This document shows positions 1 through 41,668 of a DNA stretch of 47,058 nt, piece after piece. This DNA is from Kudoa neothunni (taxonomy: Eukaryota > Animalia > Cnidaria): NCBI GenBank assembly GCA_964304625.1, contig OZ199840.1, positions 9,756,057 to 9,803,114 on the forward strand, read 5' to 3'. Positions within the stretch are counted from its first letter, which is position 1, and each line of letters opens with the position of its first letter. Under the pieces are notes generated by a model. That model searched no databases and was not told the origin of the DNA. It saw only the letters and a program-made list of their open reading frames with translations. A program made the position numbers and the translations under genes.

Positions 1-2372
1 TGTTTTATAGTCACGTATTATACTAACAAACAATTTTTTTGTTAGATCAGTTGGGTCTTCAATTATTGGTTCTAAATTTTATGTTTTAGTAATCGTTAAT
101 GATATATAATTTTTAATATATATTGTAAAATAATAACTCGGGGCTAGAATGATGGGAGTTTCTTCAGAACGATCAACAGCTGTAACCAAAATTTTATATT
201 CTTTCGAAGCGTCGTAACCTTCACTGAATATAATATTGTTACAATATGGTACTTCGGAGCATGATTTGGTATCGTTTGATGTAGTTTCTGACGACTGTTC
301 TACTGTACCAGCTCTTGCAATGGAAACTTTTTCGACATTAATTAATGATCCAGCCAATGGTGGTTGAATTGGTTCTGCAGGACATGAATATATTGTATCC
401 CACGATTCTCCATTTTTAACAGTGATTTTATAATGGCATTTTATGTCACTAATCGGTGTAGACAATTTTCCTATCATTTTATATCCTTTGTCCAATGTTT
501 CCTTCGTAAGAGTAAGAGTCGAATAAGCTATCGTATTTATAAAAATAATAGTTCATTCAATTATACTACTCGTTTTAATACTTGTGAATGTAATAGAACC
601 ATATTCTTCATATGCAACCACTTTAATATCGTAGGTAGTATTGAGTTCGAGGTCAATTAATTTCTTGGACTCCCTACATAAACCTCTACAAGGATTACTA
701 TCTACACATGTTGCTTCGAAAAATTTGTTCATTCCTGCTATACTGACAAAGTAATCACATGTGGGTTCCGTTTTGACTGTTCCAGGATCACCGATAATTG
801 CTTTAACTATGCTAGTTGAATCACCCGCAATAGGTTTTGCAGTATTAAAATTTGTGTCAGTTTTTTTATCTGAAATTATTAATTAATTCGAATATTATGA
901 TAACTTTAATACTTGTTTGGACAAAAATGTATTCCTTAAAATCTGCATAGTTTTTTATAGTATTAGTAGTTGTAGTAGTAATAGGTACAACTACTATCAT
1001 TAGAGGTCGTCCTTCAGGTAATCCTTGAATAATGAGAGTATCATTACAATTATTTACACAACCACCCGGATTTGAACATGTTGGAGCTATAAATTCATTA
1101 TTTTTGGTAGTATCTGCGACATAATATTTGATTGCACACCGATCAAATCTCGTAGTTACGCCACTTGGCTTAAATAATTCCACATTTAACTTTACTCCAG
1201 AATTGGTGACTGATACTAATGCATTATCATTTCCAGTTGGTTCGATGATGGCTAAAATATAATTAGACAGTTTATCTAATTATTTATACCAAATTTTTTG
1301 TATGTAAATCCTTCGAACGATCCACCCTGTTTTTCCGATAAACTATGGTGTCTTCTTCGTACCAATATTTCTACAATTGGCTTTGTTGGAGTAATAGTGA
1401 GTTCTACGTCGTTACAGGGGGCGTAGCATTGTTTTTCAGAACTGCCGCAATTTGATGAAAAACCGGTTTTAGACTTTGCTGCATCCAATGCATCTCTGAT
1501 ACTAAAGTGGCATATTTCATTAGGAATTGGATTCGTAAATTTTAGTTGATATTTGGTTTTATCCTGAGCAGATTTGTATTTAACATAGAATTGTGGCTTG
1601 TAAACGTCTATATTTTCTTTCATATAATAATTTGGCATGTGGTAATAGAAAATAGGATAATCGGAGCATCTCACTTCAAAATACGGGATTTTTATTCCAT
1701 ATTCAACAGTATTAATATTAATAGTGTCATTAGCTTTACCACAGTCTGCTGCTTTAGGCACATCTTTGTATTTTATTCCTTTGTAATAAATGGGACAAGC
1801 GACAGGTTTGCATGTGATGGCTTCCAACTTTAAATATTTCCGATTTGTGGATGGTTTTATGTTCGGATCAATTAATAATGCTAAATATTTATTAATTATT
1901 TAACTAAGCTTTAAACTTACGAATTCTAAATCCAAAAACTTTTCCTCCCTTTGGGAGACACGATCCTTCAACATCACCACCGGACGAACCATCTTTAATA
2001 TAAATGTATTTTGATCTAGGTGATAGTTGTGTATATGTAAGCTTATTGTCGGTGCCAGCGCAATTCCGTACACATTTATCCTGAACATCACTAACTTTAC
2101 TTGGACATGTTTCAATTTCGACAAAGTTATTTCCTTCAGCATTTTCTTTCATTATGCGGCACTTATTTTGGCCTATGTATTGTGTTCCTTTCAGTTCGAT
2201 ATGAATCTTATTGGTGTTAGTATCGGAATGATCTAGCTGATAAAAAACTTCTCTTTCAACAGTAGCGTCATCGGAGTAACAAGTAATTAAAACTAAATGA
2301 AATTCACCAGAATCAAACAGATATTTGTATACGTGAAAATATGATGACCAACGAAAAAGGTTCCATTTTCAT
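1..2372 (-). CDS. Paralog A of the multi-exon Cys-rich cell-surface protein family (3' end runs off the window)
   Basis: Manual splicing: ATG at 2372; GT-AG introns at 2293-2332, 1881-1920, 1252-1289, 870-912, 528-569, 72-137. Internal exons are 372/591/339/300/390 nt, all multiples of 3, phase 1-1. N-terminus MKMEPFSLVIIFSLLITCYS-DD is signal-peptide-like. Colinear with the four other copies. Confidence 0.88.
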
Positions 2373-3362
2373 TATAATCATCAATTAACCTAAAAATATA
2401 AATCTGTTATTCTAAATATATTCAGTTATTAAGCTTCTTATTTTAATACGAACTAAAAAATGAATGCATATAATTATAAATAAATTGTTTTATAAATATA
2501 GTCGGAGCTAAATCATCAAGATAGAGTTTTTAATAAAATATAATAAAAATAATTAGAGTTAATATGTCGTTGGGGTTTATTTTATTATTTTATATCTATT
2601 TCCGATAAAGATCAATGTATTCTTTGATTATTGTTAGGCATATTTATTTGTAGAGTACGAAAGTTACTTTTATTTCATTTTCACCGAACTTATCTTTTAT
2701 AAGGAAATATAAAAGCTTTATATTAAAAAATAAGACATCTTATTAAATTAGTAAAAAGATCAATTTCTTGATGAAATTCTAGTTTTATGAAAGCTTCTAA
2801 TCCTTTGTCATTTATAATAAAAACTGTCGTACATTTTTTATTATTGGAAGTATTTACATCTGCAAGAAATTTCTATTCGTCACATATCGTTCAATATGTA
2901 AATGATATTTTTATTATTTAAATAAATCTTTCAAATTATTTATTTATAACTCATCTTTATGTTAATTAAGGAAATAATGTCTAGTCTTTATGTAAATCGA
3001 TCTGCAAGCTGAATTTTGTAACTTACAGAGAATAGTATTATCACTCATTAATTTTGTTTTGTACTATTATTGATATTATTCGTTTATCTATCAATAGTTT
3101 TCACTTCTATTATTATTAATGCTTCATATTTAAAGATAATGAAGCAACCTTATCACATTTGTCTTAATTAATTATAACTGTTGTATAGACAAGAATAATT
3201 TCTGTTGTAACTTTTATAGTCATAATGTTATATAATAAGAATAATCCAATTAATATATCTTTCATTATCTAAAATAAAAATTATCTACAACCCCCCAAAC
3301 ACACAAAATATACTTCTTGAGTCTATTTAAATAATCGATTTAATTCAAACAAATGAGGAATT
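2373..3362 (-). promoter_or_regulatory. Duplicated 5' flank of paralog A (homologous to 9461-10332 and 23285-24300)
   Basis: Alignable non-coding blocks upstream of A, B and C, e.g. TTATCTTTTATAA(C/G)GAAATA.AAAAGC.TTATAT.AAAAAATAA. B/C homology extends ~1.7-2 kb (to ~11180 and ~25260). Regulatory role is inferred only from position. Confidence 0.5.
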
Positions 3363-3933
3363 TTGGTAATGGGGGAGTGTGCAGCTCCCATTTTTCACCC
3401 CCTTGCGCATGTCTGACAATCCCGATTTTATTTTAAATCAATTATTCACTATTTTAAACTTTTGGCCGAACAACAATTCGCTTCATAATTCACTTCTAAA
3501 AATTTTGCCAAAATTCACGTTCGGCTTCAATCGGTGCGTGTGCATGTGAATGCGCAAGGTAGTTTTGTTCTATTTTCAATATGAATTTATCATATTACTC
3601 ATGATTAAGCGTGTTTTGTCTTGCTTAAATTTAATATGAATAGTCGGAACGTCGCGGAATGTAAAAATAGCTGTTTATAGCTGCACGAAATAACTAAAAT
3701 GTATTAATTTCGTCTGCCAAATTGTTCTAGCTCTCTGCTTGTGCAAAATCGTTTATCATGAAATTTATTAGTTTATATATTATTTTTAATATTCCAAACC
3801 AATTTTAAAATAAGCTAATCCACAAATATATCACATGTATTATTAATATTCTTTCAAAAGCATAATAACTAAGAATTAATTCACATAAACTTTTAATATT
3901 ATATATGAAATCCATAAATTTGCAGTTTTATAC

Positions 3934-4098
3934 TGTTAGGGAAAGGAATCATCGTTCAAATATAACAATAATAATATAGAGGCTAATATAAGGGTATTTA
4001 TATAGTTAGCGCCAACTGTATATTAATACACAGGTACCGACCAAGATAACGTGTGTCATTGTAACTTTGACGCCGAAGACTAACTGTTAGCCCCAACA
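3934..4098. mobile_element. Solo LTR (165 bp) nested in the Merlin element
   Basis: Termini TGTTAGGG...CCCCAACA (TG..CA with short inverted repeat); perfect 5-bp TSD TATAC (3929-3933 and 4099-4103); second copy at 17916. Confidence 0.85.
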
Positions 4099-4559
4099 TA
4101 TACATTTTTATAAATTTTGGATAGAGTCGTTGTGAATTTATAAAATGATTTCATTGGAACTCTCTACAAGTTTTTATTCGATATAGTTTTTCACCAAGAT
4201 ATTTTTCGTAAATAAGTCGTATAAGTTAAAAAAGCATGTTTTTATTTTTATCATTTTAATTCTATATAAAAATAAAATTTTGTGATTTCATTTATAGTTT
4301 TTAGTTTCCTACATTAGAAACATAACTCACGATAAATTAAAAATTGTAATTCATGTATTATTACGTTCTTGTGAGGTTAAAAAGCTAACACTACAATAAT
4401 CAATGATTCTGTTTAAAAATAATTCAAGAATATAGAGGAGATTATAAAACTCTATTTAAATATTATATTTATTTTCTATTTAGCATTGCGCATAGAATAA
4501 GAAGCAAATTTAAAAGAACCAAAAAATGGAATTATTATTCAATTAATTCTAAGAGATAG

Positions 4560-5700
4560 GGTAGAGTGTATTTATCGAATTTAAAATAAAATCGAAAAAT
4601 TCCCATTTATTGCTAAACTTCGATCACATCCATTCTTCGTGAAGATATGAATCAAGGTACGCTCTGGGGACACCACTCACCCGTCGTAATAATTTGGTCT
4701 TAAGATGGTGCCACACAACTTCCACTGTATATTTGTGGTAACCTTCTCTTGTAACATATTCCTTGGAATGGTTAATATTTTATGGGTAAATCCATACATT
4801 CCAAGGGTTTGATATGCTTCGCATTCATCAGTAAATATCGTGGAACCAGGCTCAACTTCTTGATGTATTAATGATATCAATGCACTCTCATCCCTTCTTT
4901 GAACAACAAAAAATCTGGATTCTAATAGATTTCTTTTGCTTTCATTGTCGACGGAGCATTCGCATATCCCGACCACCCAAGGCCCTTCGATACAATTACC
5001 ATAACGCTCAACAGTGTAGGAATTTTCACAGCTTTCGATTTCGTCATTTTTCGATTCAGATAGAATATAGGTTTCATTAGGGGCGTTTCTCAACCAACCT
5101 TATGCCAAATATCGTCTACGATTATTTTTTCGCTTCCCCCTTAGGAGACATTTGTCAATATCGATAACTTTTTTAGGGCCACCAAATTTTGAACGCAAAT
5201 AAAACGATTCAGTTGAAATCATCCCAAATTTGAAAAACCAACATGTAACCGTTTTTCCAGATAATTGTGCCAAGCTAACTGTTCTGCTCGCTGTTCTTCG
5301 AAACTCCATACATATATTATCTCAAATATTTCCTGAATTGTTAAATTTTAACAATTATTCCCAAATGCGTTAGTCATTGAAAAGAACGTTGATGTCTGAG
5401 GAGAACAATGAGTTCTGCATTTTGTACTGTAGGAAAATAAAATATTTTTTACTAACAACATTACTTGGAACATACATATGAAAATCTTTCAGCTAACTTA
5501 TTGTATCGTTCACTCAAAGCATTAATACTTAATTTTCGTTTAATAACTTTCAGTTTAAAACTATTGCATCTTCCGCAATTCCTGCATCTTGTAGGAATTC
5601 AGATAAGATTTTTGTCAATTAACAAATTTGTTAGTTTCTCGATGCTGAGTAAAATGTTGTAACATCGGCGTTGGCTACTGATAAACACCATAACGAAGAT
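4560..5700 (-). pseudogene. Merlin/ISXO2-type DDE transposase pseudogene
   Basis: GGPKKVIDIDKCLLRGKRKNNRRR (cf. GGPG.IVEIDES.FGKRKYNRGR), WVVGICE, EVEPGSTIFTDECEAY, frameshifted HKYTVEVVWHHLK (cf. HTNTIEG.W), N-terminal CRNC. Stops and frameshifts present; ends approximate. Confidence 0.85.
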
Positions 5701-6274
5701 TTGGTAAATGTCGTGTTAACTACAATGAAAACTACTCTGAAAATGTAAAAATGTGTTATTTATGTTTGGTACAAATAAAAAATACATTAATTATTAGGGG
5801 TCCATAAAATAAATTATATATACATTCGAATGAATTTTAGGCAAAACCGAAAATTTAAGAGAGAAATCTATAAAAAGTTTCTTCTTAGCGTGTTCTCAAG
5901 AAATTGGCATAATCGATCTGATGCGGTTAACGCGGTAATGTTTTCCATTAAGGTCGACAGAAAGATTAAAATTTGTTGAAATAATAGTGGTAAAACATAT
6001 TGGAAATTTAAAGCAAGGCAAAAACATGCTTAATCATGAGTAATATGTTAAATTCATATTGAAAATAGAACCAAACTACCTTGCGAATTCACATGCACAC
6101 GCACCGATTGAAGCCGAACGTGAATTTTAGCAAAATTTTTAGAAGTGAATTATGAAGCGAATTGTTGTTCGGCCAAAAGTTTAAAATAGTGAATAATTGA
6201 TTTAAAATAAAATCGGGATTGCCAGACATGCGCAAGGGGGTGAAAAATGGGAGCTGCGCATTCCTCCATTATCC

Positions 6275-6396
6275 ATTATAATTTTTGTATCGTTTAATAA
6301 TATTTTTTTGATTATGTTTATGCAAAAAAAACTTGGGGTCCAAAAGACCCCAAGTTTGTTGGAGGGTAGTCATTTTTACATAACTTAGAGGGTTAA
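6275..6396. mobile_element. Orphan piggyBac-like terminus
   Basis: Subterminal inverted repeat AACTTGGGGTC-caaaa-GACCCCAAGTT, then ...AGAGGG followed by TTAA (6393-6396), as in piggyBac ends. Confidence 0.55.
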
Positions 6397-6578
6397 AGAC
6401 GGGTTATAACTTATAACCCAAACTTTCAACTGAAATTAAATAATTATACTTCAAATTAATTTTAATAGAAATATTGGATGAAATAAATAATTATAAAATA
6501 TTCATTTAAATTAGTTATGAATCATGATAAATAATATTATTCATTATCTACTACAAAAAAGAATATTTGTATCATTCT

Positions 6579-9460
6579 TTATTTCTTTCTGTAGGCCATA
6601 AAACCTCCTATTCCTCCGATAAGTATAATTGCAGCAACAACCGACACTATAATACTAAACGAAAAAATTAAAAAAACGACTACTCACATCACATACATTG
6701 TTATATTGCCTGACCTATAAAATAATAATTACATACAAAAATAATTATAAATAAATTTACGTTGATTTGCTAGCAGTTGCACCTAAAATTAGAGTTATAC
6801 AATATTTCTAAGTATTTAAGAATTGGATCACCTTTGTCAATTTCAGCTGTACCAAATATTGTTCCATCCATGCTGTAGAATACGGTCAGATGATAGTCGT
6901 TTAGATCCTCCACATTTTCAATCGTAAAATTCTTACAGCTTGGAAGGGTCGTACAATCATCTCCTCCGTTACTCATACATTTTTTGACGGTTGGTCTAGC
7001 CACGTCGTTTGAATTAATTAACATCCACATACATTTGGACTCTCCATCTATTCCAACTGGAAGTATGGTCGTTATCTGTAATGTTTTATCGTCACGTACT
7101 ATACTAACAAACATTTTTTTTGTTAGATCAGTTGGATCTTCAACTAATGGTTCTAAATTTTATGTTTTAATAATCGTTAATGATGTATAATTTTTAATAT
7201 ATATTGTAAAATAATAACTCGGGGCTAGAATGAAATGAGTTTCTTCAGAACGATCAACAGCTGTAACAAAAATTTTATATTCTTTCGAAGCGTCGTAACC
7301 TTCACTGAATATAATATTGTTACAATATGGTACTTCGGAGCATGATTTGGTATCGTTTGATGTAGTTTCTGACGACTGTTCTACTGTACCAGCTCTTGCA
7401 ATGGAAACTTTTTCGACATTAATTAATGATCCAGCCAATGGTGGTTGAATTGGTTCTGCAGGACATGAATATATTGTATCCCACGATTCTCCATTTTTAA
7501 CAGTGATTTTATAATGGCATTTTGCGTCATTAAACGGTGTGGACAATTTTCCTATCACTTTAAATCCTCTGTCCAATGCTTCCTTCGTAAAAGTAAGAGT
7601 CGAATATGCTATCATACTTTTAGTAATAATAGTACATTTAAGTATAATACTCGTTTTAATGTTTGTGAATGTGGTAGAACCATATTCTTTATAAGCAACT
7701 ACTTTAATATCGTAGGCAGTATTGAGTTCGAGGTCAATTAATTTCTTGGACTCCCTACATAAACCTCTACAAGGATTACTATCTACACATGTTGCTTCGA
7801 AAAATTTGTTCATTCCTGCTATACTGACAAAGTAATCACATGTGGGTTCCGTTTTGACTGTTCCAGGATCACCGACAATTGCTTTAACTATGCTAGTTGA
7901 ATCACCCGCAATAGGTTTTGCAGCATTAAAATTTGTGTCAGTTTTTTTATCTGAAATTATTAATTAATTAATTCGAATGTTATGATAACTTTAATACTTG
8001 TTTGGACAAAAATGTATTCCTTAAAATCTGCATAGTTTTTTATAGTAGTAGTATTAGATGTAACTACTATCATTATTGGTCGTCCTTCAGGTAATCCTTG
8101 AATAGTGCGAGCATCATTACAATTATATTTGCACTCATCCTTTTTTAAACATGGGTCTATAAATTCATTATTTTTGGTAGTATCTGCAACATAATATTTG
8201 ATTGCACACCGATCAAATCTCGTAGTTTCGCCAGATGGCGCCAATAATTTCACATTTAAAATGACTCCAGTATCTGTGACTGATACTAGAGCATTTTCGT
8301 TTTCAGCTGGTTCAATGATGGCTAAAATATAATTAGATAGTTTATCTAATTATTTATACCAAATTTTTTGTATGTAAATCCTTCGAACGACCCATTCTCT
8401 TTTGCCGATAAACTATGGTGTCTTCTTCGTACCAATATTTCTACAATTGGCTTTGTTGGAGTAATAGTGAGTTCTACGTCGTTACAGGGGGCGTAGCATT
8501 GTTTTTCAGAACTGCCGCAATTTGATGAATAACCAGGGGGGTTTGAGGAGCTTACTACATTCGATGCATCTTTGATACTAAAGAGGCATATTTCATTAGG
8601 AATTGGATTCGTAAATTTAAGTTGTAATTTAGTATTCGAATCGACAGATTTGTAGCTAACGTAGAATTGTGGCTTGTAAACGTCTATATTTTCTTTCATA
8701 TAATAGTTTGGCATATGGTAATAGAAAATAGGATAGTCGGAGCATCTCACTTCAAAATACGGGATTTTAATTCCATATTCAACAGTATTAATATTAATAG
8801 TGTCATTAGCTTTACCACAGTCTGCTGCTTTAGGCACATCTTTGTATTTTATTCCTTTGTAATAAATGGGACAAGCGACAGGTTTGCATGTGATGGCTTC
8901 CAATTTTAAATATTTCCGTTGTGTGGATGGTTTTATGTTTGGATCCACCAACAAAGCTAAATACTCCTTAATTTTGATAAATAATGTTTAACATACGAAT
9001 TGCAAGCCCAAAAACTTTTCCTCCCTTTGGGAGACTCGACACTTTAACATTTCCAGCAGATGAATCATCTTTTATATAAATGTATTTTGATCTTGGGGAT
9101 AGTTTACTGTATTCCAGCTTATTGTTGGCACCAGCACAAGTCCTCACGCACATATTTGTAATGCTAGCCTCATTGCCTTCGCATGTAATGATTTCGCTAA
9201 AATCATTTCCTGTAGCGTTTTCTTGCATCATGCGACATTTTTTCGTTGTCGAATATTGTGTTCCTTTCAGTTCAATATGAACTTTACTAGTGTTACTTTC
9301 GGAATTATCTATTTGATAGAAAACTTCTCTTTCAGCAGAAATGGAACTGGTATCATCGGAATAACTAGTATATATAACTAAATGAAATTTACTCAAATCG
9401 AACGATGAATTGTTTACGCGATAAAATTATGACCAATATTAAGGGGCCTATTTTCATCAT
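6579..9460 (-). CDS. Paralog B, complete 10-exon type I membrane protein (~823 aa)
   Basis: Introns 9378-9417, 8957-8996, 8322-8359, 7951-7997, 7609-7650, 7153-7218, 6783-6831, 6715-6760, 6655-6696 join into one open frame. Signal peptide MMKIGPLILVIILSLIYTSYS; C-terminal TM IIIVSVVAAIILIGGIGGFMAY, then RKK-stop (TAA 6579-6581). Confidence 0.9.
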
Positions 9461-12400: not shown

Positions 12401-12989
12401 ATCAGCAACACGATTTCAGAACAGGTACGTATTTTTCTAACATCCAAGTATGTTAAACAGGAAAAATAGCTATACCTACCATTTTATATTTGTTTTAGAA
12501 ATCCACCCAACTTCTGATCCTATTACAATGCTAGATACTGACAGCATTCTTAAGAAGAAAATAGAGGTTGATATAACACCCCAAGTCACGATTAATGGTC
12601 TCCATAAAATTGGATCAGCAGCATGAAGTATTAGATATTTTTTTGTGATATTAACACAGCACACTTCGAACAGTAAACGAAGCATATAAATCGCATGACC
12701 TACTGTTACATCCAAAAATAAATGTCGGGGATGGAGTTTGTTATTAATTTCACACTCCAAAAAATGGCAAACAAAAGTGTTTCATGTAAAGTTTCTACTC
12801 TTATCGCTTAATGATAATAGAATAACTTTTGAACATACTGCAAAGAATTGGAATAATGTTCCACATAATATTGTAGATATATTCCCAAAAATAGAAACAG
12901 AGACATTGTTTCATATAAATAAATTTGAATGAAATTTATATAAATATTGAATTTAAATAGGCGAGTAAGATCCATAAAGATAAGAAAAT

Positions 12990-17330: not shown

Positions 17331-17915
17331 TTAGGGATACGATCGAATGGTATTGTTTACTTTCCTACACCTTATTCACAAACAAATGTTTTGAGGGAGA
17401 AAAGAAGAAACTTCCAATGCATAATACTAGAGTACCAGACGCAAAACGTTTATATTAATCTGATTTGATGCAGATGGTTTTATACGAAATAATAGAGTCA
17501 ATGAAATTAATCGATCGATAAAAAAATTATTGGATTATGACATTCAAACGCTTTTCAAATTTTCAATTTACTTGATTTCATTTAATAATAATTTTAATGT
17601 GTTTGTTTATTGTGTAAATTTTTTTTCAATATAACATCTATACACAGATTTATATTCCATAACCCACGCCCAGGTTGCTCTAATCCTCTAGGTCACCTGA
17701 AGGTAGATTTAGATGAAAACATAAAACACTACAAAATACAACTAAAAATTGTTCTATTCTTTTTAAATTTTAACCATCTCTATTCGATCGCGAATCTTAC
17801 AATTTCTAATAGATTAGGCTTTAAACAGTCCTATAACTTTTTTGAAATTCACCATTTCTTAGAACACACAACTTTCGGGAAATTCCGAAGTTTGTATTGT
17901 ATATATCTAGCTATC

Positions 17916-18078
17916 TGTTAAGGCAAGGAACCATCGTTCAAATATAACAATAATAATATAGAGGCTAATATAAGGGTGTTTATATAATTAGCGCCAACTG
18001 TATATTAATATACAGGTACCGACCAAGATAATGTGTCATTATATCTTTGACGCTGAAGACTAATTGTCAGCCCCAACA
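17916..18078. mobile_element. Solo LTR (163 bp), same family and orientation as 3934-4098
   Basis: TGTTAAGG...CCCCAACA, high identity to the first copy; own 5-bp TSD CTATC (17911-17915 and 18079-18083). Confidence 0.85.
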
Positions 18079-20262: not shown

Positions 20263-20425
20263 TTAATATGTTTAAACTGAAATTAAATAATTATACTTCA
20301 AATTAGTTTTTATAGAAATATTGGATAAGATAAATAATTATAAAATATTCATTTAAATGGGTTATGAATCATGATAAATAATATTATTCATTATCTACTA
20401 CAAAAAAGAATATTTGTATCATTCT

Positions 20426-25086: not shown

Positions 25087-25108
25087 ATATATATATATAT
25101 ATATATAT
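25087..25108. repeat. (AT)11 microsatellite
   Basis: Read directly from the sequence. Confidence 0.9.
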
Positions 25109-29428: not shown

Positions 29429-29718
29429 TTTCACAAGAATCACAAACGATATTAAACAACTTTTATCTACAATTAGACCAGTTCAATTATTCAACATCGT
29501 GACCCATTCAATTTAATCAATAAATTCGTTAATTTATCTATAAAGCTTTGCTGTAATTAATATTCTCGGAAAAATTCATATTGAAGACAATAAGTATTAA
29601 TCTACAACATCAAATATATATTTAGAGATGATAATTATGGTTATAATTTTTGATTACTTTTATAACCCCATGCCGCTTAATTTCAGCTCTATATTTCAAT
29701 TAATAATATATTTACATA

Positions 29719-31985
29719 TTAGCCCTCCGAGCGCCTGAAAATCGACATTACACATTACTTCTATTGGGGTCAAATGGACCCCGCATTTTTTTAGCTTAAA
29801 TTATAGATAAAAATGAACTAAGTCATTTACTAGAGTATGAGAGAAAAATATCAATAAAATATTAGAAATATTACAATTATAACACTGCCAGTTGTTAACG
29901 ATGATCACAGAAACATTTAAAACGTTAAATTAGGCATCAAATTAAACGAGTTTAGCTTCTTTTTTTAATATAATGGGTTTTAATAAAAAATATATATCAT
30001 TCCCCGTTAAGTCGATCTTAAAAATTGTTTCCTTCATAATTAATTTCTTAATAATCACGCCCAACAATACCCGCAATAAATATTGTTCCAAAATACATAG
30101 AATGCGAGATATTTATCTTATTTTGTTTTTTTATATTGAAAAATATCACTGAAACAACTTTTGAACTGCTTTCATTGCGGATGGCTCTACAAACAAAATA
30201 AAAAAGTCTTCGCTTTTCTGTCTCGAGATCTCGAACAATAACAGCATCACACGCGACAAAGAAATTCTATTATGCAATTATAATTTTTATCAACGCGAAT
30301 TTTGTTTCTCTGAATATAACCTTTCGCTAAACCATCTACAAGTTCATCTATAAATTTAACTCTTGAACAATTGAGATCATAGAAAACAGTCATACAGATA
30401 AAATGAATGAACCAAGTTAATACCAACCATAATGAAGAATACTGATGTTGACCATCGATTCTTTTACTTTAGACACTCGTTGTAGCGATAATGTGATCCA
30501 CTGTTTCTACTCCTCCTTTTTGACGATTATATTCCAGATTAAAAACGGGTTTTTTCATAATGAACCGGAGGTTGTTAGTAGTAAAACTGCTTTACCTTTA
30601 TAGGATCATAGGAACGTTGGAGATTAGTATTAGTTTTTGATTAAACAAAAGTGTACTGAAACTTCGCGTTTTGAATCTTTATTGAGATAATTTGTAATAT
30701 CACTTTTATTATTTCGGATTGTTCCAGTCATTCCCCGTGTAAGATTTTTTGGCCAATGGAAACAGAAGTAAAGAAATTTTCACAAATTACACTTCTCCCA
30801 CTTTCCATCAATGATGACAGAAGATCTTGAACAATATCTCCTCAATATTCTCTGACATTTCATTATTATTTTTGTCCAAATATACAAGAAAGTTATGAGT
30901 GTACTTGATCTCGGGATTGGTACGGAGAAAATACTTAATTCCGCATATTGCCGGCTTGGACAGTATACGTAGCGCGGAGGTAAATTTTCCCTAAAAGCAA
31001 ATAGCTACTGGTCAATGGTCATATTCTCCTGGGAGTAATAAGTAATAAAGTTCGGAACAACAATCTTTCCAACCCTTAAAATATCACAAATGGGGGGAGA
31101 ACTCATCCATGATTCCTCAAGCTTCTCTGGTTTTGAATTCTTCATAATGAATGACCCTCAAAATTTGATTAAACCTATTTATGGCATAATCTTTCGAAAA
31201 ATATCCCTTCGTTTCCTAACACTCCGAAACAATTTGAATCATTCTAGTTAAGATTTAAAAATGGGAATACAATTTTGGATTCCCAAATTAACTATCAAAT
31301 CTTGTTTTGAAAAGTCCTCAAATAATTCAGATAATTAAAATTGGTAAACGTTAATGTTCGAAATAACAGTTGAGAAAATAGATTTACCATAAAATATGAG
31401 GAATGATCATCTAAGAAGGTGAATCTGTTTGATTCATATGAAATCGAACCTGGATACTATGAAAAATATTTCGTTTAAAGCTTTTAATTATTGGAAGTTT
31501 TTCGGAAAACCAATAAATATCATATTTATCTTCGTAAAAGTTTCGACAGCGTTCATTATCTTCAGAAACAGAATGACATAAATATCTAAATTATCAAAAG
31601 ATATCTTAAAATTCATCCAATATATTACAGTCAGAATTACTTATGGCAGCGTTTTACTCGTCGGCAATGGTCTGTATTTAACGTATGTAAGGTTTTTTCA
31701 ATTTTTCTCTGTTTTTTCACGATAAAATTTTATTTAATTCACAAAAACTGTTGTAAAAGATTTTTTTTTATTGTTTGGTAGAAACAAACGTGGGGTCGAT
31801 TGGATTTTAAAAGAAGGAATGTGTAAGTATTTTGATTATTTCGTTACCTGAAGGCAAAAATTAAAATTTTCTGTTATATTTTAGTAGAATTTATATTTTT
31901 AGGAGAACGGATGTGATCTTAAATCATATAATGAAATATAAGGTCCTCTAAAACTGATTCAAACATCCATTGGGATCCAATTGAC
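29719..31985 (-). mobile_element. piggyBac element with transposase pseudogene
   Basis: Terminus TTAG-CCCT at 29719-29726 plus GGGGTCAAATGGACCCC. Minus-strand motifs MTIDQ*LFAFR (cf. TVDEQL.PFRG), KPAICGIK (cf. KP.KYGIK), CENFFTSV (cf. DN.FTS), GTIRNNK, YNRQKGGVETVD (cf. YN.TKGGVD..D). Right boundary approximate. Confidence 0.85.
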
Positions 31986-32072
31986 CGTAAATCCTCACGT
32001 ACAAGCCGCACCCAAACTTTGAAGATTGTATTCTGGTTTACAGGTATACAGCATGTATAAGCCGCGCCCATC
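31985..32072 (+). repeat. Possible pogo/Tc1-type TIR end with internal direct repeat
   Basis: CCGTAAAT...GTACAAGCCGCACCCA...GTATAAGCCGCGCCCA; no partner end found. Confidence 0.3.
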
Positions 32073-34399
32073 ACGCCAAACTAATTTTATTCGTCATCCC
32101 AATACATTCTTTCATTAATTTAACATAGTTAATTTTACCTAGTCACATAAGTCATTCGTGAAGTCTGTCGTCACACGCATGAGTTGGCTGACTAAGTTGT
32201 AATTAGTCCTTTAAAAAATCGAAGGTGATTATGTGTTGAAGTAGGTTTATAAAATATGACGTAATATTTCACTTTATATTCAAAAACTAGAGAATAAATG
32301 TTTATTTTTAGGTTTTACACAATTTTTATATTGTTGAGATAAAAAAATACTTTTGACTTATTGTCTTCCATGATTGATTTACCCATAAAATGCTTAAAAA
32401 TCGTATATTTTGATTTGCGACGATTACTCTACTTTTAAGTTAATTTTAATTTAACAAAATTTATTGAATATTTTTGGTTTTAGTCACTTAATATACCAAT
32501 ATTAAAAGAGAACTTAATAAAATAAATTAAAAATTTTCATGTTGGAATTTTTGAACAAATATTGTTATAACTTTTTTTTACTCATGGATAAACTATGTAA
32601 AAAAAATTATGAACTAAAAACCATATTAAATTAAGCCATAGTTAAATTGAAATATCCTCCTTCTAATTTTGAATAGAATAAATCAGAAAGTTCTGTTTTT
32701 AAAATAAGAAGTCAAGATTGAACATTTACAAGCTTATTACTAACAGATACGAATAAAAAAAATTAAGTGAAAAATTAACGACGTCGAATTTGTTAAAATT
32801 ATACAGATATAAAAATTGTTTGAGTTGAGTTGAATTTAATTAAATAATGTAATTTTTTGTAAGAAGATCAAAAATGGAAAAATTTTTGGAAAAGAAGTGA
32901 ATTAACAGGACGAATTGTGGGAAACGACTTCATTTCCGATTTTGTATGCGACACCACCCCAAATCCGTAAACGTATTATGTAGTACTGCAGTTTATTCGA
33001 TATTTTCAATTTCACTCAATATCAATTCAGCACAATTTTTAAAAATTGAGTGGTGAGAAAACAACATAAAAATTATTAAATCAAATTTACTGTTTTTGAT
33101 TTAAATGATATTAAACTACATATTTTAATAGTGTTCATGGATTTACTGTAAAAATGAACGAGTTCTTATAATCAATTGTTCACTCGTTAATTTTACGCGT
33201 ACGTTTTGCAATAATTTCTTTAAATTAAGTTTACGTGTGCCTATGTAATTCTTTTAGTTTACGTATTTTTCAAATAAAATTTGATCATGTTTAAAACACG
33301 TTGTTTGAAAAATCCATCTATATTCACCAGATATTCCGTCAATATTGATCCACCTTTTAAAGTTTTACATATAAACATCGCAAAATATCTTCTAACAGTT
33401 AAGGCATTTATTCTTAGTTTCTAATAAAGTGCGAAAAATAAAAAAATTTTTGAAACATATATTATTTGTTTACTACCAAATCAAAAGTTTAATGTAGTTT
33501 GTACAATTTAAAATAAATATATGACGGTTGGTGAATATTAGAGTTTTAATTGTATTTTGTTAAATAATTATTGCATAAAAACATGGATGGTTTATGGTAT
33601 TGAAAAAATATCACTTTAAAATTAAACCTTTTTCCATTATCCAACTAATTCCAAAACTTATTAACTTGTCAATATAATTAAGAAGTTCATAAAACCTTTG
33701 GGTAAAAATTTCTTCCATCACAACATTAGCATTATAATTTGGCGCGAATTATAAGGATCTGTTTATAATAGAGACCGGCAATCATCGACTCGCGAAGGTG
33801 TCGAAAATGATATTAAAAATTTATTAGTTAACGATTACAACGTTAACAATATGTCCTATTTTTTAATCACAATTTCAATTCGTAACACATTACACAAAAT
33901 AACAAGGTTTTACTTAAACATTCCTTTCGATTTAAATAGGAATGTATATACTAACATTATTATATAAACATTCACCTATAAATAAATAACTTTAAATTGA
34001 TTCTTACTGATAATATTTCAAAAAACTTAAACAATGTCCCGCGTTAACGGAAGATGATTCCGCGATACTGTTTATTATACATGTTTCCATTATGCGAGAA
34101 TTGAAAAAAGAATTTCTTCTATTTTATATGAAGTTATGGTAATAATAATAGATAATTTGTTATATAATAAAAATAAACAGACATTATCTTAGCAAGTTCA
34201 GTAGATCCTGCTAGAGTTGTATGTTTTTGTGTTAACCGACCCGCGCCTTATCTACCGTTTGGCATTTTGACCCCACATCCCGAATCGGTTACCGAGGACT
34301 GTTTTTATCGGAGAAATAACGTTCAAAAACAAAGAAATTCTGGTCATTAATCTTAAATTATAAATAAATATGCCTGTACGAAATATCCCAATCAAATCA

Positions 34400-35330
34400 A
34401 ACTTTTTAAACTCAAAACCGAAAAAAATTCGTTCATGTACATTGCATAAGAAATCGAACTAATTTTCAACGAATAAAGAGCGAACAAACCCAGGTAAAAC
34501 TATATTTAAGACGATAACGAGGATCCGCAACACATTTGAAATGCCACGACTAGTAAAAAAATGATAATTTTATTTAATAATTTTTGATGTTGTTTTCTCA
34601 TCATTCAATATTTAAAAATTGTGCTAAGTTGATATTGAGTGAAATAGAGATAGTGGTGCATGCGGAACACTGTTAAATTCTGGCGCCACACACTCCGTGA
34701 TTACCCAGATGTGACTTTAGCGACCTACCTCGCTTTGATCTGATAACGACTGCAAAATCAGCTTCATCTAAAAAGATTATGTTCTCATGTCGTACCGATA
34801 TTTTCAAATTGCGAAACATGTCGATGTATTCTTTCCAGGGTTGATTCACAATTTCTCCTTTCAGGCACGATCACTAGAGTTTTGAGAGTATAGTGAAATT
34901 CATCAATCACTCGATCTATAGTGCTAATAGACACATTTAAATCGAGTTCATCCAAAACCTTTTGCTTGAGCTCCTTTAACGTTATCTTGGAGTTTTCGTC
35001 CATCCATGAAATAATTTTTTCTTTCTGCTTTAATAACGAAATAGAGCGTTTGTCGCCTCGTCTAGGTTTCAGTTCGATGACTCCTGTCTTTTGAAATTTC
35101 GAAATTATTGTGGCCACAGTAGGATAGACCTTGATAACTTGATTTGGGAGGCAATCGCAGTAGTGCTCGTTCCCAAAAGAATAAGCTCATGTCTTTGCTC
35201 CCTTTTACCCATGGAAATCGTCGTCTTTTGCTTCCGTTCCTGCTTGGATATTTGAACAGGAGAAGTTTCATGTTCACAGGGATCTGAATCAGGCGAGCCC
35301 TCGATATTACCATGATGACGATCAATAATT
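34400..35330 (-). pseudogene. Tc1/IS630-like transposase pseudogene 1
   Basis: PRRGDKRS, ITLKELK, VSISTIDRVIDEFHYTLK, PERRN, then frameshifted IIFLDEADF (first catalytic D); C-terminal part decayed. Confidence 0.8.
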
Positions 35331-35589
35331 AATATTACTTAATGTAGCAACTTCTATATTGATACAATATTATAATCAGAAGCTCGGATTTTTTTGGAAA
35401 AATAAATGATAATTTTTTAAAGCAAAAAAAAACTAATCCGCTCCTTAACGTTTAAGAAATACCCAATGATGTCCCATCCTTTTTATGTTTATGTTATGTT
35501 TTTTCATTAAATTAATGCAGTTTATCAAAATTCTAAAGATTATGCTCTACATAATAATGTAAGTAACATTCTGAGTTTTACTAATTGAT

Positions 35590-36596
35590 TGCTTCATCGA
35601 TGTTTTTTTGAGAAGTAGCAAATATCATATCAAAGATGCAATTTCTTATCCATAACATTTTTTATATAATTATAGGGTTTTCTGATCAATATGAGATTTT
35701 CTGCTTCTGCCCTTATAACCAAATTTTTCCACTAGGAAAAAGTATTCTCTGTAGGATTTAGGAACGGATAATACGGTGGCAGGAAAAACAATTTAAATTG
35801 GAATGAGTCAACTGTGTCATTGAGTCCGCTGTAATGATGGATACGTGCGTTATCAAGAATGAAAATCGGATTGTTTATATCCTTGAATAAACAGGCATTC
35901 TTTATTTCAATCAGACATTTTCTAAAATCTTATCATTCATTGCCTTATCGTAAATTTTGTAATATATCATGCCATATTTATTCATAACAGACACAACCGA
36001 AATACTTCTACTCCAGGTAGAGGAAACAGAAAGATAAGGCAAAACCCTTCTTGCCGAACTGCCTCTTTTCGGTCATGTCACCACCGAAAACCCTACCTCG
36101 TCCATAAATATGAAGGTTTTATCCTCTTTCTCCAGCTTATATCCTCTAAATTTTTTAGCATATTTGAATCTCGTTTCAACCGTGGATTCACAATTTCTTC
36201 TTTGGGAATCGGAACGGCAGATTTTATTGTGTATTGGAAATATCGGATAATTCTGTCAACTGTACTTATGCTGACGGAGAGTCCAAACTTTTCACTGATT
36301 ATTCTGATGATATCGCTCAGTCTCAGCAAACAATCGTGGTTAATTCAAATTTCTAATTTTTGATCGTAAGATAACTTAGACTTCCCTTCACCTCCACGTT
36401 TCTGAATGTTTACAACATCATTTCTGTTGTAGTTGTCGATTATTCTCCAAACGGACTTGTAGTTAAGTGAAAGATTTTCAGAGATCTGTTTCGCCGATAT
36501 TCCTTCCAACGATTTGTTTATGATTTTTACCCTATCATCATCGTTAATGCTTACCTTGTTTTTATTAGGTTGACTATTACCAGAATTAAATTCCAT
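35590..36596 (-). pseudogene. Tc1/IS630-like DD34E transposase pseudogene 2
   Basis: HTH region with KRGG, VSISTVDRII, FMDEVGF, FILDNARIHH...FLPPYYPFLNPTE (34 residues between D and E); internal stops and frameshifts. TIRs not identified. Confidence 0.88.
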
Positions 36597-36954
36597 CTTA
36601 AAAATATGAATATATGCAATATTTACAAGAGCATTTTAATAATATATAATTTATATAAACTAATTAATTAATAGGAAATACTTAGTGACTTCGCCGCTCG
36701 ACAGAATGTTCCTCGTAGTCTTACGTGATTGTAACAAATCTAGCTATTAGGCAACTAAACTTACATCTCTTTTGCGGTGTTCACCTTAATGGGAAAAAGC
36801 CTTATTTTAAAAAGATGAGTCTCAGATTTCCGCGAAAAATCTCATATTGATCGTGAGACCTATAATACTAAAAAATAATGTGTTAATTCGATTATATCCA
36901 TATATTGTTGTAACATGTGGATTATAAGGGTTGCACTCCATCAATCACAGATAC

Positions 36955-37035
36955 GCGATCGAGAGCAGTGCGGTATGGCACCGTCGTCTTTTAATTCAAA
37001 GAACCTAGGTTCTAATCCCGGTTCGGACCTTGTGT
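36955..37035 (+). repeat. Possible tRNA-derived SINE head (degenerate)
   Basis: B-box-like GGTTCTAATCCC followed by GGTTCGGACC, with a weak GC-rich A-box-like segment ~40 nt upstream; no convincing cloverleaf. Confidence 0.35.
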
Positions 37036-38212
37036 TGCAACTTTTATAAAATACACGAGGTTATAATAAACCAAATAATAAAATTCGTTAAATTTATCCA
37101 CAGGCGACCTTCACAACCTCTTTTATAGCGTCTCCATATTTGGTGGTCCCTACATTTTTTATCCCCGGTATAAAAATAATGGTTGAACAAAATTTTATCG
37201 CATCCGCGTTTTGTTTGGAGCTTGACGAATGAGTTTTCATTTTTTTCCATGTTGAAGATTATACACCCACAGCCATATGTGAACTAAACGCGCATGAAAT
37301 AATATCACCGGCGAGTGCGGAGGAATCGCCAAAAATTCGCCGTATGTTTCCCTCTAATAACAATAAGATTCGTGTACTTAAAGTTTATTCCTGCCATCAA
37401 ATCACATTATTTTAACTAATATAAATTATTTCGAATAAATAATAATTTAAGGTATTCTTACATAATAAAACACACTTCATTATTTTTTTATCTCGCTTTA
37501 ACTATTGATTACTAAATATGTTGTGTATTTAATACCACTTAAAATATCTTTAGTATTAAATATATTTACTTTTACAATATGTTGGCATTGGAATTGAAAA
37601 ACTATAATAATTTTACTAATAATTATTGAAAACAATTATATTAATAATTTAAGCGACGAAGAAAATATTAAATAAAACTTTCTTAAGTCGATACTTGTAA
37701 AGTCGGCCTTATAATAAGTCTAGTTGACATAATAAATTACACAACAAAAATTGTAACCAATTCATTATTTTATTATATTAAATATAATAAGGTTAATCTT
37801 CAAATTTTCAAAATATTTCCATCTGGCTGCACAAATAAACCTTATGAATGTTTATTAAAAAGATTTAAACTGTTAATCATTAATAAAAGATGGCTAAGTA
37901 CATATTTATTGGCAATAAACTTGTAATTTTTTACTTATTTTTATAATATTTCATCACGATTAATATTATAATAATAATAGAAAGTATTAATTAGGCTAGT
38001 ATAAAATATTAAATGAAATATTAATTAAAATGTTTAACGATGAGCGATAAACTAAATTTTTAAGTAAACATAAATAGGAAGACTTGGAATTAGTTTTTAT
38101 AGAAATATTGGATAAGATAAATAATTATGAAATATTCATTTAAATTATTTATGAATCATGATAAATAATATTATTCTTTATCTACTAATAAAATGAATAT
38201 TTGTATCATTTT

Positions 38213-41099
38213 TTATTTATTTCTGTAGGCCATAAAACCTCCTATTCCTCCGATAACTATAATTGCAACAACAACCGACACTATAATGCTAAACGAAAAA
38301 ATTAAAAAACAACTACTCACATCACATACATTGTTTTATTGCCTGACCTATAAAATAATAATCACATAAAAAAATAATTATAAAATAAATTTACGTTGAT
38401 TTGCTACCAGATGCACCTAAAATTAGAGTTATACAATATTTCTAAGTATTTAAGAATAGGATTACCTTTATCAATTTCAGCTGTACCAAATACTGACCTA
38501 TCCCTGCTGTAGTATACGGTCAAATGATAGTCGTTTAGATCCTCAACATTTTCAATCGTAAAAGTCTTACAATTCGGAAGGGTCGTACAATCACCCCCTC
38601 TGCTACTCAGACATTTTTTAACGGTTGGTCTAGCCACGTCGTTTGAATTAATTAACACCCATTTACATTTTGACTCCCCATCTATTCCAACTGGAAGTAT
38701 GGTCGTTATCTGTAATGTTGTATCGTCACGTACTATACTAACAAACAATTTTTTTGTTAGATCAGTTGGGTCTTCAACTATTGGCTCTAAATTATATTTT
38801 TTAGCAATCGTTAATGATGTATAATTTTTAATATATATTGTAAAATAATAACTTGGGGCTAGAATGATGGAAGTTTCTTCAGAACGATCAACAGCTGTAA
38901 CCAAAATTTTATATTCTTTCGAAGCATCGTAACCTTCACTGAATATAATATTGTTACAATATGGTACTTCGGAGCATGATTTAGTATCGTTCGATGTAGT
39001 TTCTGACGATTGTTCTACTGTACCAACTCTTGCAATGGAAACATTTTCTACATTAATTAATGATTCAGCCAATGGTGGTTGAATTGATTCTGCAGGACAT
39101 GAATATATTGTATCCCACGATTCTCCATTTTTAACAGTGATTTTATAATGGCATTTCGCGTCACTAATCGGTGTAGACAATTTTCCTATCACTTTATATC
39201 CTTTGTCCAATGTTCCCTTCGTAAGAGTAAGAGTCGAATAAGCTATCGTATTTATATAAATAATAGTTCATTCAATTATTGTACTCGTTTTAATATTGGT
39301 GAATGTGGTAGAACCATATTCTTCATATGCAACCACTTTAATATCGTAGGTAGTATTCGGTTCGAGATTAATCAAGGTCTTGGGCTCCTTACATAAACCT
39401 CTACAAGGATTACTATCTGAACAAGTTGCCTCCACAAATTTATTTTTTTCTGCTATACTGACAAAGTAATCACATGTGGGTTCAGTTGTTTCGGTTCCGG
39501 GATCACCGACAATTGCTTTAACTATGCTAGTTGAATCACCTGCAGAAGGTTTTTCAGTATTAAAATTTTTGTCAGTTTTTTTATCTTAAATTAAAGATGA
39601 ATTCGAATATTATGATAATATTGTTACTTGTTTGGACGAAAATATATTCCTTAAAATCCGAACTCTCATTTATATTACTTTTGGATATCACTAACGTGAC
39701 CGCTCTTCCGTCCGGTAAACCTGTAACCGTGTAGGCAGCGGTACAAACGGTAGGGCAATCGGTACCGCTACCTGATGTGCAAGTTGGAGCTTTGGTATAA
39801 GTATTTCTGGTAGTATCGGCATGGTAGTATTTAATTGCACATTGAGTAAATCTTTCGGTATTACCTGATGATGCGAATAATGGCAAATTTATTTTCACCC
39901 CTGCGTCCCCCACTGTTATTAATGCATTTTCGTTTTCATTTGGTTCGAGAATGGCTATTAAAGTATTAAAAAAACTATTATTTATTATTTTTACCAAATT
40001 TTTTGTATTTATATCCTTCAAATTCTTCGTTTGCATTTGTTGCTAATTTGTGGTGTCTTTTCTGGACCAATATTTCAACAACTGGCTTTGTTGGATCAAG
40101 TGTGAGTTCTACGTCGTTACAGGGAGCGTAGCATGCTTTGTCATTCTGCTCGCATTTTGAGGTAAAAGCAGATGGTTGTGCAGGTGTAGCACTCGACCCA
40201 TCCCTGATACTAAACAAGCATATTTCACTAGGAATTGGATTCGTAAATTTAAGTTGGTATTTAGTTTTTTCGGTTTCAGATTTATATCTAACGTAGAATT
40301 GTGGCTTGTAAATGTCTATATTTTCTTTCATATAATAGTTTGGCATGTGGTAGTAGAAAATCGGGTAATCAGTACATCTTACTTCAAAATATGGTATTTT
40401 TACGCCGTATTCCACTGCGTCATCATCATTTCCACTTGCAGAAGTCAAACAGTTTTCTCCTTGAGGCACTTCTTTATATTTTATTCCTTTATAATAAATT
40501 GGACAAGCCGCTGGTTTACAAGTTGTGGCTTGTAACCTCAGTAAATAATCGTTATGCGTAGATGCCCCTATGTTTGGATCCACCAATAATGCTAATAATT
40601 CATTAATAATGGAAAATAGACAACTATCATACGTATTGGTAGACCAAACACTTTGGCTCCACTTTTAACACCACCGTTTTTTAGGCCGTCTGCGGATGCT
40701 TCATCTTTTATATAAATATATTTTGATCTGGGTGAAAGCTTGTCGTAATCATGCTTATTATCAACCCCAGCACAAGTTCGGATACACTTATTATTAACAT
40801 CACTCTCCTTACCTTCACATGTGTCTATTTCTTCGTAGTTGGTACCCAATGAATTTTCTCGCATTATGTGGCACTTTTTACTGTTTTCATAATCCGTTCC
40901 TTTCAACTCGATATGAAATTTAAAATTGGCGACAGTGGCCTCATGTATCTGATAATACACTTCTCTAGTAGGAGCAGATGCTGAAGCGTCAGCTGAGTAA
41001 CATTCATTCGAAACTGAACAATAATTACTAAGTAAAAGATATAATTAATTTACGTGAAAATATAATGAGAAAAATGTGAAGAATTATATTCGGAGCCAT
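38213..41099 (-). CDS. Paralog E (~825 aa): divergent N-half, A/B/C-like C-half
   Basis: Introns 41014-41053, 40592-40632, 39955-39994, 39585-39627, 39243-39284, 38787-38852, 38417-38465, 38348-38394, 38289-38329; exons sum to 2478 nt. N-terminus MAPNIILHIFLIIFSLSNECYS; ends TM-RNK-stop. Confidence 0.9.
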
Positions 41100-41648: not shown

Positions 41649-41668
41649 TAACTAACTAACTAACTAAC
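41649..41668. repeat. (TAAC)5 microsatellite
   Basis: Read directly from the sequence. Confidence 0.85.

Follow-up and report, generated by a model that had tools for sequence, protein, structure and literature searches.

A large family of predicted FN3-like, membrane-anchored surface proteins in the fish parasite Kudoa neothunni

Our work has identified five neighbouring genes of the myxozoan Kudoa neothunni as members of a previously undescribed family of roughly 250-300 predicted single-pass surface proteins, which are built from seven divergent fibronectin-like (FN3-like) domains and whose outer ends are reshuffled by gene conversion. On sequence evidence alone, the family is a good candidate for the way in which these parasites vary their surface. 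The genes lie in a stretch of 47,058 nucleotides (the window), and the original prediction had described them as a tandem array of five surface-protein genes hidden by mini-introns. This observation is confirmed by our analysis, with two corrections: the cysteine content is moderate rather than high (3.4-3.7%, four cysteines per domain, no CXXC), and the five genes are not the whole system but about 2% of a genome-wide family. The interpretation that had been attached to them, a lineage-specific diversifying surface system acting as variant antigens or in recognition, possibly in a myxozoan, is only partly supported. The myxozoan origin, the type I topology and the diversifying multigene family with recombination were correct, whereas the predicted fold and the scale, hundreds of copies on all chromosomes rather than one locus, had been missed. 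Moreover, "lineage-specific" is too narrow, since related multi-copy genes with the same introns occur in other AT-rich genomes, and both a variant-antigen and an allorecognition function remain hypotheses; the proteins are not members of the VSP or Alr families.

The five co-oriented genes share nine GT-AG introns of 38-104 nt (71-91% AT) at the same aligned positions, introns 1-7 in phase 1 and introns 8-9 in phase 2. No stop or frameshift was found in any window copy, and the copies share 59-87% amino acid identity. As judged from hydropathy alone, the four complete proteins have a signal peptide (11-aa Kyte-Doolittle values of 2.5-3.2 at the N-terminus), an ectodomain of about 770 aa and a single C-terminal hydrophobic helix of 22 aa, followed by the tails RKK/RKK/RNK and a tail of 9-11 aa in gene D. 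A GPI anchor instead of a transmembrane (TM) helix is not excluded, but the basic tail argues against it. These models are not due to chance: a spliced profile aligner scored 3000-3700 on the genes but 48-57 on intergenic controls, and 30 of 30 retrieved family loci had introns at the same columns. The flanking transposons (ISXO2-like, Helitron and Tc1-like) are broken.

Features of the five-gene array; coordinates are those of the window, and exons and domains are shown for gene D
Feature	Position	Strand	Description
Gene A	1..2372	-	Exons 1-6 and start of exon 7; 3' end lost in the 200-N scaffold gap before the window; introns 2332-2293, 1920-1881, 1289-1252, 912-870, 569-528, 137-72
Gene B	6579..9457	-	10 exons, 822 aa; introns 9417-9378, 8996-8957, 8359-8322, 7997-7951, 7650-7609, 7218-7153, 6831-6783, 6760-6715, 6696-6655
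Gene C	20426..23284	-	10 exons, 817 aa; mosaic with A, B and Z-type sequence
Gene D	26520..29428	-	10 exons, 820 aa; divergent subfamily (59-60% to the others), longer tail, almost no difference from its putative allele D2
Gene E	38213..41099	-	10 exons, 825 aa; divergent 5' half on a 3' half homogenised with A/B/C, introns included
Exon 1	29395..29428	-	Signal-peptide core (predicted)
Exon 2	28979..29350	-	Domain D1, membrane-distal; confident beta-sandwich model, best structural matches FN3 domains (Z up to 6.2); among the most variable domains
Exon 3	28337..28933	-	Domains D2+D3, family-diagnostic core with C-Y/F-A-P-C motif; model matches tandem FN3 pairs
Exon 4	27976..28296	-	Domain D4, highly variable
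Exon 5	27633..27932	-	Domain D5, most canonical FN3
Exon 6	27206..27589	-	Domain D6 with a length-variable Ser/Thr/Pro-rich loop (124-162 aa across loci)
Exon 7	26781..27101	-	Domain D7, membrane-proximal
Micro-exons 8 and 9	26654..26741	-	22 nt and 18 nt; Ser/Thr-rich juxtamembrane stalk; same layout in the distant homologue L050
Exon 10	26520..26613	-	Transmembrane helix (predicted) with GGIGG and short basic tail
Repeated stretch	2759..47058		Repeated in the next contig (C3 9803315-9847948) with B2, C2, D2, E2; probable second haplotype

Several lines of evidence suggest that the ectodomain consists of seven FN3-like domains with four cysteines each, encoded by phase-1 exons. All database searches and structure models were made exon by exon. 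Among the domains tested (D1, D2-D3 and D5), the models of domain D1 (pLDDT 86.6) and of domains D2-D3 (pLDDT 61) gave lists of structural matches that were dominated by FN3 domains, although the Z-scores were middling (5-7, below 8) and the Foldseek E-values were above 0.001. In domain D5, 14 of 18 members matched Pfam fn3 (PF00041) with a best E-value of 9.8e-5, but below the gathering score: the window member reached 17.3 bits against a cut-off of 25. The EF-loop leucine and the tyrosine-corner motif (L-x-P-x-T-x-Y) are present, with invariant L, T and Y in domain D5, which aligns to the FN3 domains of contactin, titin and Dscam, and a related motif was found in domains D1 and D4. In contrast, the conserved tryptophan of strand B is absent from the alignments of domains D1-D5, indicating a divergent variant. 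Pfam searches with the exons for D1, D2-D3, D4, D6, D7 and the TM helix, a PDB sequence search with exon 3 and an Atlas feature search with P0003 gave no hit. Profile-profile comparison between the domains is weak (best D4-D5, E 0.0016; D3-D7, E 0.006), and the common origin of all seven thus rests on the cysteine pattern, the exon phase and the folds.

The array is a small sample of the family in the 40.26-Mb genome, which comprises three chromosomes plus an 18,219-bp mitochondrial contig (PMC12239612). An exact motif had 249 hits as compared to 14 in the control, and allowing one mismatch gave 528 versus 239, i. e. 235 copies above background or about 290 with one mismatch, on all three chromosomes. 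Protein searches returned 306-493 candidates; the 150th exon-3 hit still had an E-value of 5e-48, and 147-149 of 150 scored hits were stop-free. Dense clusters lie near the ends of the assembly sequences C1 and C3 as well as internally. Gene models were built for 30 loci plus 167 kb around the window, and 5 of the 30 loci carry frameshifts. The next contig repeats 44 kb of the window with identical ends; this is probably an unpurged haplotype of genes B-E, and the counts are therefore somewhat inflated. In contrast, the five window copies are not haplotypes of each other. Homologues with the same introns occur in five fish-parasite-like datasets, and one of them, L047, lacks intron 2 exactly at the modelled junction. 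No named homologue was found in NCBI or UniRef, in searches restricted by query length and to a single-exon profile, and no paper describing the family was found in the literature, subscription journals not being covered.

All domains are under purifying selection, with dN/dS values of 0.27-0.53 per domain over 10 independent pairs. Cross-validated variable columns have pN close to pS, and no dN/dS above 1 was found even in these columns; positive selection was not demonstrated. The membrane-proximal halves, introns included, are homogenised by gene conversion, whereas the distal halves stay diverse: between gene E and B/C/Z, introns 1-3 are 48-63% identical but introns 6-9 are 89-98% identical, and the max-chi permutation p was about 0.0005-0.0015 for most triplets. 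Across subfamilies, pS is 0.26-0.28 in domains D1 and D4 as compared to 0.08 in domain D6. The putative alleles differ by 9-12% in the 5' halves of genes C and E, but by 1.8% in the flanks and by 0.9% in the paralog-poor gene D, and about half of the differing sites show both bases in paralogs. There is no shared upstream motif across subfamilies, and we saw no sign of a dedicated expression site or of a pseudogene cassette archive.

In our view, these genes form a large, functional family of single-pass surface proteins of Kudoa, and probably of other marine myxozoans: a rod of seven disulfide-stabilised FN3-like domains on a membrane anchor with a tail that is too short to signal. Our analysis demonstrates the gene structure, a copy number in the hundreds, purifying selection on the framework, birth-and-death duplication, and gene conversion that homogenises the membrane-proximal half and reshuffles the distal domains, whereas the FN3 fold, the surface display and the disulfides are inferred from sequence and models. 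It is a further inference, and a tentative one, that the repertoire faces the fish host and serves as a variant coat or adhesin set, expressed in stage- or clone-specific subsets so that antibodies against one distal end would miss the others; expression, localisation, exposure to host antibodies and switching are all inferred here. It is tempting to speculate that an animal parasite has turned a metazoan FN3 receptor module into a protist-style antigenic-variation system, with hundreds of genes expressed one or a few at a time per plasmodium or stage and conversion generating new distal ends; this is not excluded, but it is unlikely on present evidence. Antigen turnover in myxozoans is reported without a known molecular basis (PMC8481699; bioRxiv 10.64898/2026.02.11.705288), and myxozoans are reported to change their surface antigens and to persist despite fish antibodies, with no molecular basis known in Kudoa. 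The family makes this question testable and provides candidate diagnostic or vaccine antigens, in particular the conserved proximal domains. A genome that has shed most of its genes keeps about 250-300 copies of one surface protein, about 5% of its roughly 5,300 annotated genes and probably among its largest gene families, yet the genome paper does not mention it; since the genome was repeat-masked and annotated without RNA, the family may have been missed.

The pattern of variable distal and homogenised proximal halves also fits recognition receptors or neutral conversion, and other explanations have to be considered. The members might be a co-expressed adhesin or decoy-receptor repertoire that binds different host ligands (matrix, cell receptors, possibly cytokines), with the diversity reflecting binding range rather than escape from antibodies. 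Tandem FN3 rods are scaffolds for adhesion and cytokine binding, the best fold matches include FN3 domains of cytokine receptors, NCAM and integrin, the subfamilies are old, with a foreign sequence nested among K. neothunni copies, and the short tail suits a non-signalling binder. However, the fold matches are ties and show no function, there is no WSXWS motif, and rapid patchwork conversion of the distal domains would erode fixed specificities; we regard this idea as possible but unlikely. Somewhat less likely still is a code for self/non-self or cell-in-cell recognition that would work like Hydractinia Alr or Dscam through isoform-specific homophilic binding. The cnidarian origin, the clustering, the arrangement of one domain per exon, the hyperpolymorphic putative alleles and the disulfide-bearing FN3-like domain of Alr proteins (PMC9546547) speak for this, whereas the lack of any indicated V-set or I-set Ig domain and of an ITAM/ITIM tail, and the presence of hundreds of copies on three chromosomes rather than one linked complex of about 40 genes, speak against it.

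Equally doubtful is the view that a structural coat or matrix-like protein was amplified for dosage or by transposon-driven duplication, and that its diversity is a neutral by-product of duplication and conversion. The genome is rich in repeats (45.6%), the genes are embedded in transposon debris, the variable columns evolve at about the neutral rate, not above it, and some loci carry frameshifts; yet the polarity of conversion, the 5-10-fold excess divergence of the distal halves between putative alleles, the intactness of most copies and the maintenance of deep subfamilies argue against this view. Finally, mis-spliced models or uncollapsed haplotypes are very unlikely and already largely refuted. 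The read coverage is only about 7x, the next contig does repeat part of the window, and the junctions are modelled from sequence alone; however, the window copies differ by 13-41% in protein and have different flanks, the introns are the same in all 30 loci and in other species, the intron 2 junction is supported by L047, and the modelled exons are under purifying selection.

The family resembles the diplomonad VSPs and the 18 VSP-like genes of Sphaerospora molnari (bioRxiv 10.64898/2026.02.11.705288) in being a multigene parasite family with a predicted signal peptide, a large cysteine-containing ectodomain, a conserved glycine-containing TM helix and a very short basic tail. However, the VSP criteria of at least 5% cysteine and at least six CXC/CXXC motifs are not fulfilled, with 3.4-3.7% cysteine and no CXXC or CXC, the tails (RKK, RNK, KKK) lack the motif [KR]X[KR]XK[KR], the TM exons gave no Pfam VSP match, and the family has predicted FN3 beta-sandwiches and nine introns; the resemblance of the anchor is best read as convergence. 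With the Hydractinia Alr family (PMC9546547), it shares clustered single-pass proteins of a cnidarian, domains on separate exons, highly divergent Ig-fold ectodomains with an FN3-like module and extra disulfides, pseudogenes and polymorphism. Yet domain D1 matches FN3-type rather than V-set domains, evidence of moderate strength against an N-terminal V-set followed by I-set domains, and the tails of 3-11 aa in the nine intact-tailed copies of the local cluster have no ITAM or ITIM. Protist variant-antigen families that are diversified by conversion (VSG, var, ves1) also have hundreds of paralogs, clusters partly near chromosome ends, a conserved anchor end, a variable distal end and mosaic genes, and a large, mostly intact paralog repertoire diversified by recombination is indeed present in K. 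neothunni. There is no sequence relation to these families, exclusive expression is at most inferred, and here the repertoire is found in an animal and built from a metazoan module. As compared to FN3-repeat receptors (class I/II cytokine receptors, NCAM/DCC, R3 receptor phosphatases), the family is distinguished by the four-cysteine pattern in every domain, the lack of Ig domains and of a cytoplasmic signalling domain, the absence of WSXWS and of a Box1 tail from all window models, and its massive expansion, but it shares with them the tandem FN3 domains on phase-1 exons and the single TM helix, and these receptors gave the top structural matches.

The 47-kb stretch analyzed here belongs to a 40,260,978-bp assembly that consists of three chromosomes (17.2, 12.0 and 11.0 Mb) and an 18,219-bp contig encoding divergent cox1, cob and nad1 under the coelenterate mitochondrial code. 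The mitochondrial contig (C4) has a GC content of 44% as compared to 30% for the nuclear genome, its genes are very divergent, and it gave no Rfam hit at gathering score. For the Kudoa neothunni assembly, Weber et al. (PMC12239612) reported 40.2 Mb in three chromosomes, the 18,219-bp mitochondrial contig, a GC content of 30.4%, a median intron length of 49 nt, and 5,316 predicted proteins that were annotated after repeat masking and without RNA, at about 7x coverage. The original prediction had suggested a myxozoan as the source, and this is right.

Self-comparison of the sequence revealed five homologous 3-kb units. Manual gene models for these units, A (cut at the window start), B, C, D and E, contain nine GT-AG introns at identical aligned positions and no stops, and they encode proteins of 817-825 aa that share 59-87% identity and possess a hydrophobic N-terminus, one 22-aa hydrophobic helix and a short basic tail. 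The observation of a tandem array of intron-split genes for predicted surface proteins made in the original prediction is confirmed. An independent spliced profile aligner recovered the same introns in the window, and introns at the same columns were found in all 30 loci fetched from the three chromosomes; intergenic controls scored about 50 as compared to about 3500 for the genes. Cysteines account for 3.4-3.7% of the residues, with four per domain, and they never form a CXXC motif. Just upstream of the start codons of A, B and C there are GT-AG intron candidates, suggesting a 5' UTR intron, and about 900 nt of upstream sequence are shared by A, B, C and Z, another member of the family at this locus.

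The exon junctions are inferred from comparative evidence: Contig L045 from an ENA metagenome assembly has introns 1-3 at the same places, and contig L050 (from Logan, 17% GC) is a full-length homologue with the same large-exon boundaries, the same micro-exon before the TM exon and a KKK tail. Moreover, the homologue L047 lacks intron 2 and joins domain D1 to D2 exactly as in our model, and the homologous sequence P0019 reads through several junctions in one frame. All searches and structure predictions were performed exon by exon rather than with the joined protein.

The five genes are part of a much larger family. A search with exon 3 identified 493 candidates in the genome, and the 150th scored hit still had an E-value of 4.8e-48. 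Exon 5, exon 7 and a foreign query yielded 422, 306 and 445 candidates, respectively, and nearly all scored hits were stop-free. A direct count of the codons for the motif C-Y/F-A-P-C gave 249 hits against 14 for the control, and 528 against 239 if one mismatch was allowed. This corresponds to at least 235 and probably about 290 copies in the assembly, although this count is somewhat inflated by haplotigs. The copies are arranged in many tandem clusters of both orientations, some of them dense near chromosome ends and many internal. Five of the 30 modelled loci carry frameshifts; several of the 13 frameshifts in B2, the counterpart of B in the next contig, lie in A-runs and, as we infer, may be read errors.

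Each large exon encodes one unit of 100-130 aa between phase-1 introns, with the exception of exon 3 which encodes two units, resulting in seven units in all. Most of them share the pattern of one cysteine in strand C and one in strand C', followed by C-x3-C (x5 in D6 and D7, shifted in D2). D5 matched Pfam fn3 only weakly, in 14 of 18 members, and it can be aligned to the FN3 domains of contactin, titin and Dscam at the tyrosine-corner motif; its language-model neighbours are FN3 clusters. The structural model of D1 is confident (pLDDT 86.6), whereas the model of D2-D3 is moderate (pLDDT 61). Searches with both models returned mostly FN3 domains of cytokine receptors, NCAM, integrin beta-4 and fibronectin, with middling scores that fix the fold class but not a specific relative. 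For D4, D6 and D7, the assignment is based on motifs only. D6 carries a length-variable Ser/Thr/Pro loop.

Our analysis of ten independent close pairs revealed dN/dS values of 0.27-0.53 for every domain, indicating that the genes are functional. Columns that were called variable in one half of the pairs had a pN about equal to pS in the other half, that is, relaxed or mixed selection rather than proven positive selection. D1 and D4 are the most variable domains (44% mean identity as compared to 53-61%). Gene conversion is clear: E is 56-78% identical to A, B and C in its 5' half but mostly 90-96% identical in its 3' half, and this holds for synonymous sites and for the introns as well (48-63% for introns 1-3, 89-98% for introns 6-9). 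A, B, C, Z and C2, the counterpart of C in the next contig, are patchworks with identical runs of 200-425 nt and significant breakpoints. The same polarity was observed across the subfamilies, with a pS of 0.26-0.28 in D1 and D4 but of 0.08 in D6.

The window is one whole contig between two 200-N gaps, and the next contig repeats most of it with 0% divergence at both ends and 1.8% between the genes. This is the signature of an unpurged haplotype; however, a recent tandem duplication is not excluded, since low diversity has been reported (PMC12239612). Other contig ends nearby also duplicate neighbouring sequence at 97-99%, so residual haplotype overlap seems to be common in this assembly. In either case, the counterparts differ by 9.2% (C) and 12% (E) in the 5' half but by 0.9% in D, which has no close paralog nearby, and about half of the differing sites show both bases in paralogs. 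This points to ectopic conversion as the generator of distal diversity. The five genes of the window themselves are true paralogs, and the haploid locus probably holds six or seven genes (Z, A-E, and F).

A profile search of 1.84 billion representatives resulted in 18 hits, all of them singletons from ENA or Logan, and no hit came from NCBI or UniRef entries. The 12 hits that were traced come from five datasets, three of which hold at least three divergent members each. The contigs are AT-rich with introns of 28-42 nt, and one of them carries SNF5 at 44% identity to the K. neothunni gene. We infer that they probably originate from other myxozoans. In a tree of exon 3, from which frameshifted loci and copy B were left out, one foreign sequence nests among the K. 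neothunni subfamilies on starred branches, so some subfamilies predate that split, although long branches and conversion limit the tree. A member of the family lies within 3-6 kb of SNF5 both in K. neothunni and in another species (contig L051), but on opposite sides; this is a weak hint of an old locus, and the probability of a chance finding is not small. In another organism (contig L053), two tandem genes of a more distant type have the same four-cysteine modules and TM ends. Thus, tandem arrays are not confined to K. neothunni.

Taken together, our analysis shows a conserved, anchored and non-signalling rod with a conserved base and a reshuffled tip that has been kept intact in hundreds of copies. 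In contrast, display on the parasite surface facing the fish, as well as a role of the repertoire in providing antigenic or binding diversity, are inferences, and nothing in our data shows exclusive expression or programmed switching. We tentatively favour a variant coat, even though this reading falls short of being more likely than not. A co-expressed set of adhesins or decoys seems unlikely but possible, self-recognition and neutral amplification are both slightly less likely still, and an artefact is very improbable. The interpretation of the original prediction, a diversifying surface system that might correspond to antigen families or to Alr-type allorecognition, is only partly supported.

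In its way of working, the family is similar to the conversion-diversified surface families of protists, and it resembles Alr in lineage and exon logic. However, it fails the defining tests for VSP, Alr and class I cytokine receptors. The S. molnari genome preprint (bioRxiv 10.64898/2026.02.11.705288) describes VSP-, RIFIN/STEVOR- and ETRAMP-like genes but never mentions fibronectin, and the Kudoa paper (PMC12239612) mentions neither fibronectin nor transmembrane families. While multigene surface families diversified by conversion are established in protists, what we observe here is an undescribed family of this sort in an animal parasite that is based on predicted FN3 domains.

The genes are surrounded by an ADAM-type metalloprotease gene, by remnants of several transposons and by dispersed repeats (see the table). 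ADAMs shed type I proteins, but the adjacency of the metalloprotease gene to copy E may be due to chance. The DNA transposon with long terminal inverted repeats is almost identical in the next contig.

Coordinates of the features at and around the locus and in related contigs (C3, the chromosome carrying the window; L051 and L053, contigs of other organisms)
Sequence	Position	Strand	Feature
C3	9756057-9803114		The window
Window	2759-47058		Stretch repeated in the next contig
Window	2390-2449, 9475-9526, 23301-23361		GT-AG intron candidates just upstream of the start codons of A, B and C
Window	3367-6271		DNA transposon with 251-nt terminal inverted repeats (96%) and a broken ISXO2-like (Merlin-type) transposase at 4680-5321
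Window	3933-4115 and 17915-18096		183-nt dispersed repeat, 90% identical
Window	12400-17400		Decayed Helitron-like element with a PIF1 helicase piece at 13750-13986 and an older inverted copy of one part at 12445-12914 / 16119-16595
Window	30200-31700		Remnant that looks piggyBac-like by eye, no Pfam hit
Window	33006-36600		92-nt inverted-repeat element (33006-34648) and Tc1/mariner-like HTH fragments (34785-36596)
Window	43950-45970	minus	Intron-split ADAM-type metalloprotease gene just upstream of copy E, with reprolysin zinc motif at 45528-45788 and disintegrin domain at 45009-45212 (Pfam E 4e-10)
C3	9716100-9720239 vs 9733909-9738067		Duplicated sequence at contig ends
C3	9752540-9754548 vs 9765957-9767964		Duplicated sequence at contig ends
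C3	1355653-1362258		Family member near SNF5 in K. neothunni
L051	350-5609		Family member near SNF5 in another species
L053	1-3104		Two tandem genes of a more distant type
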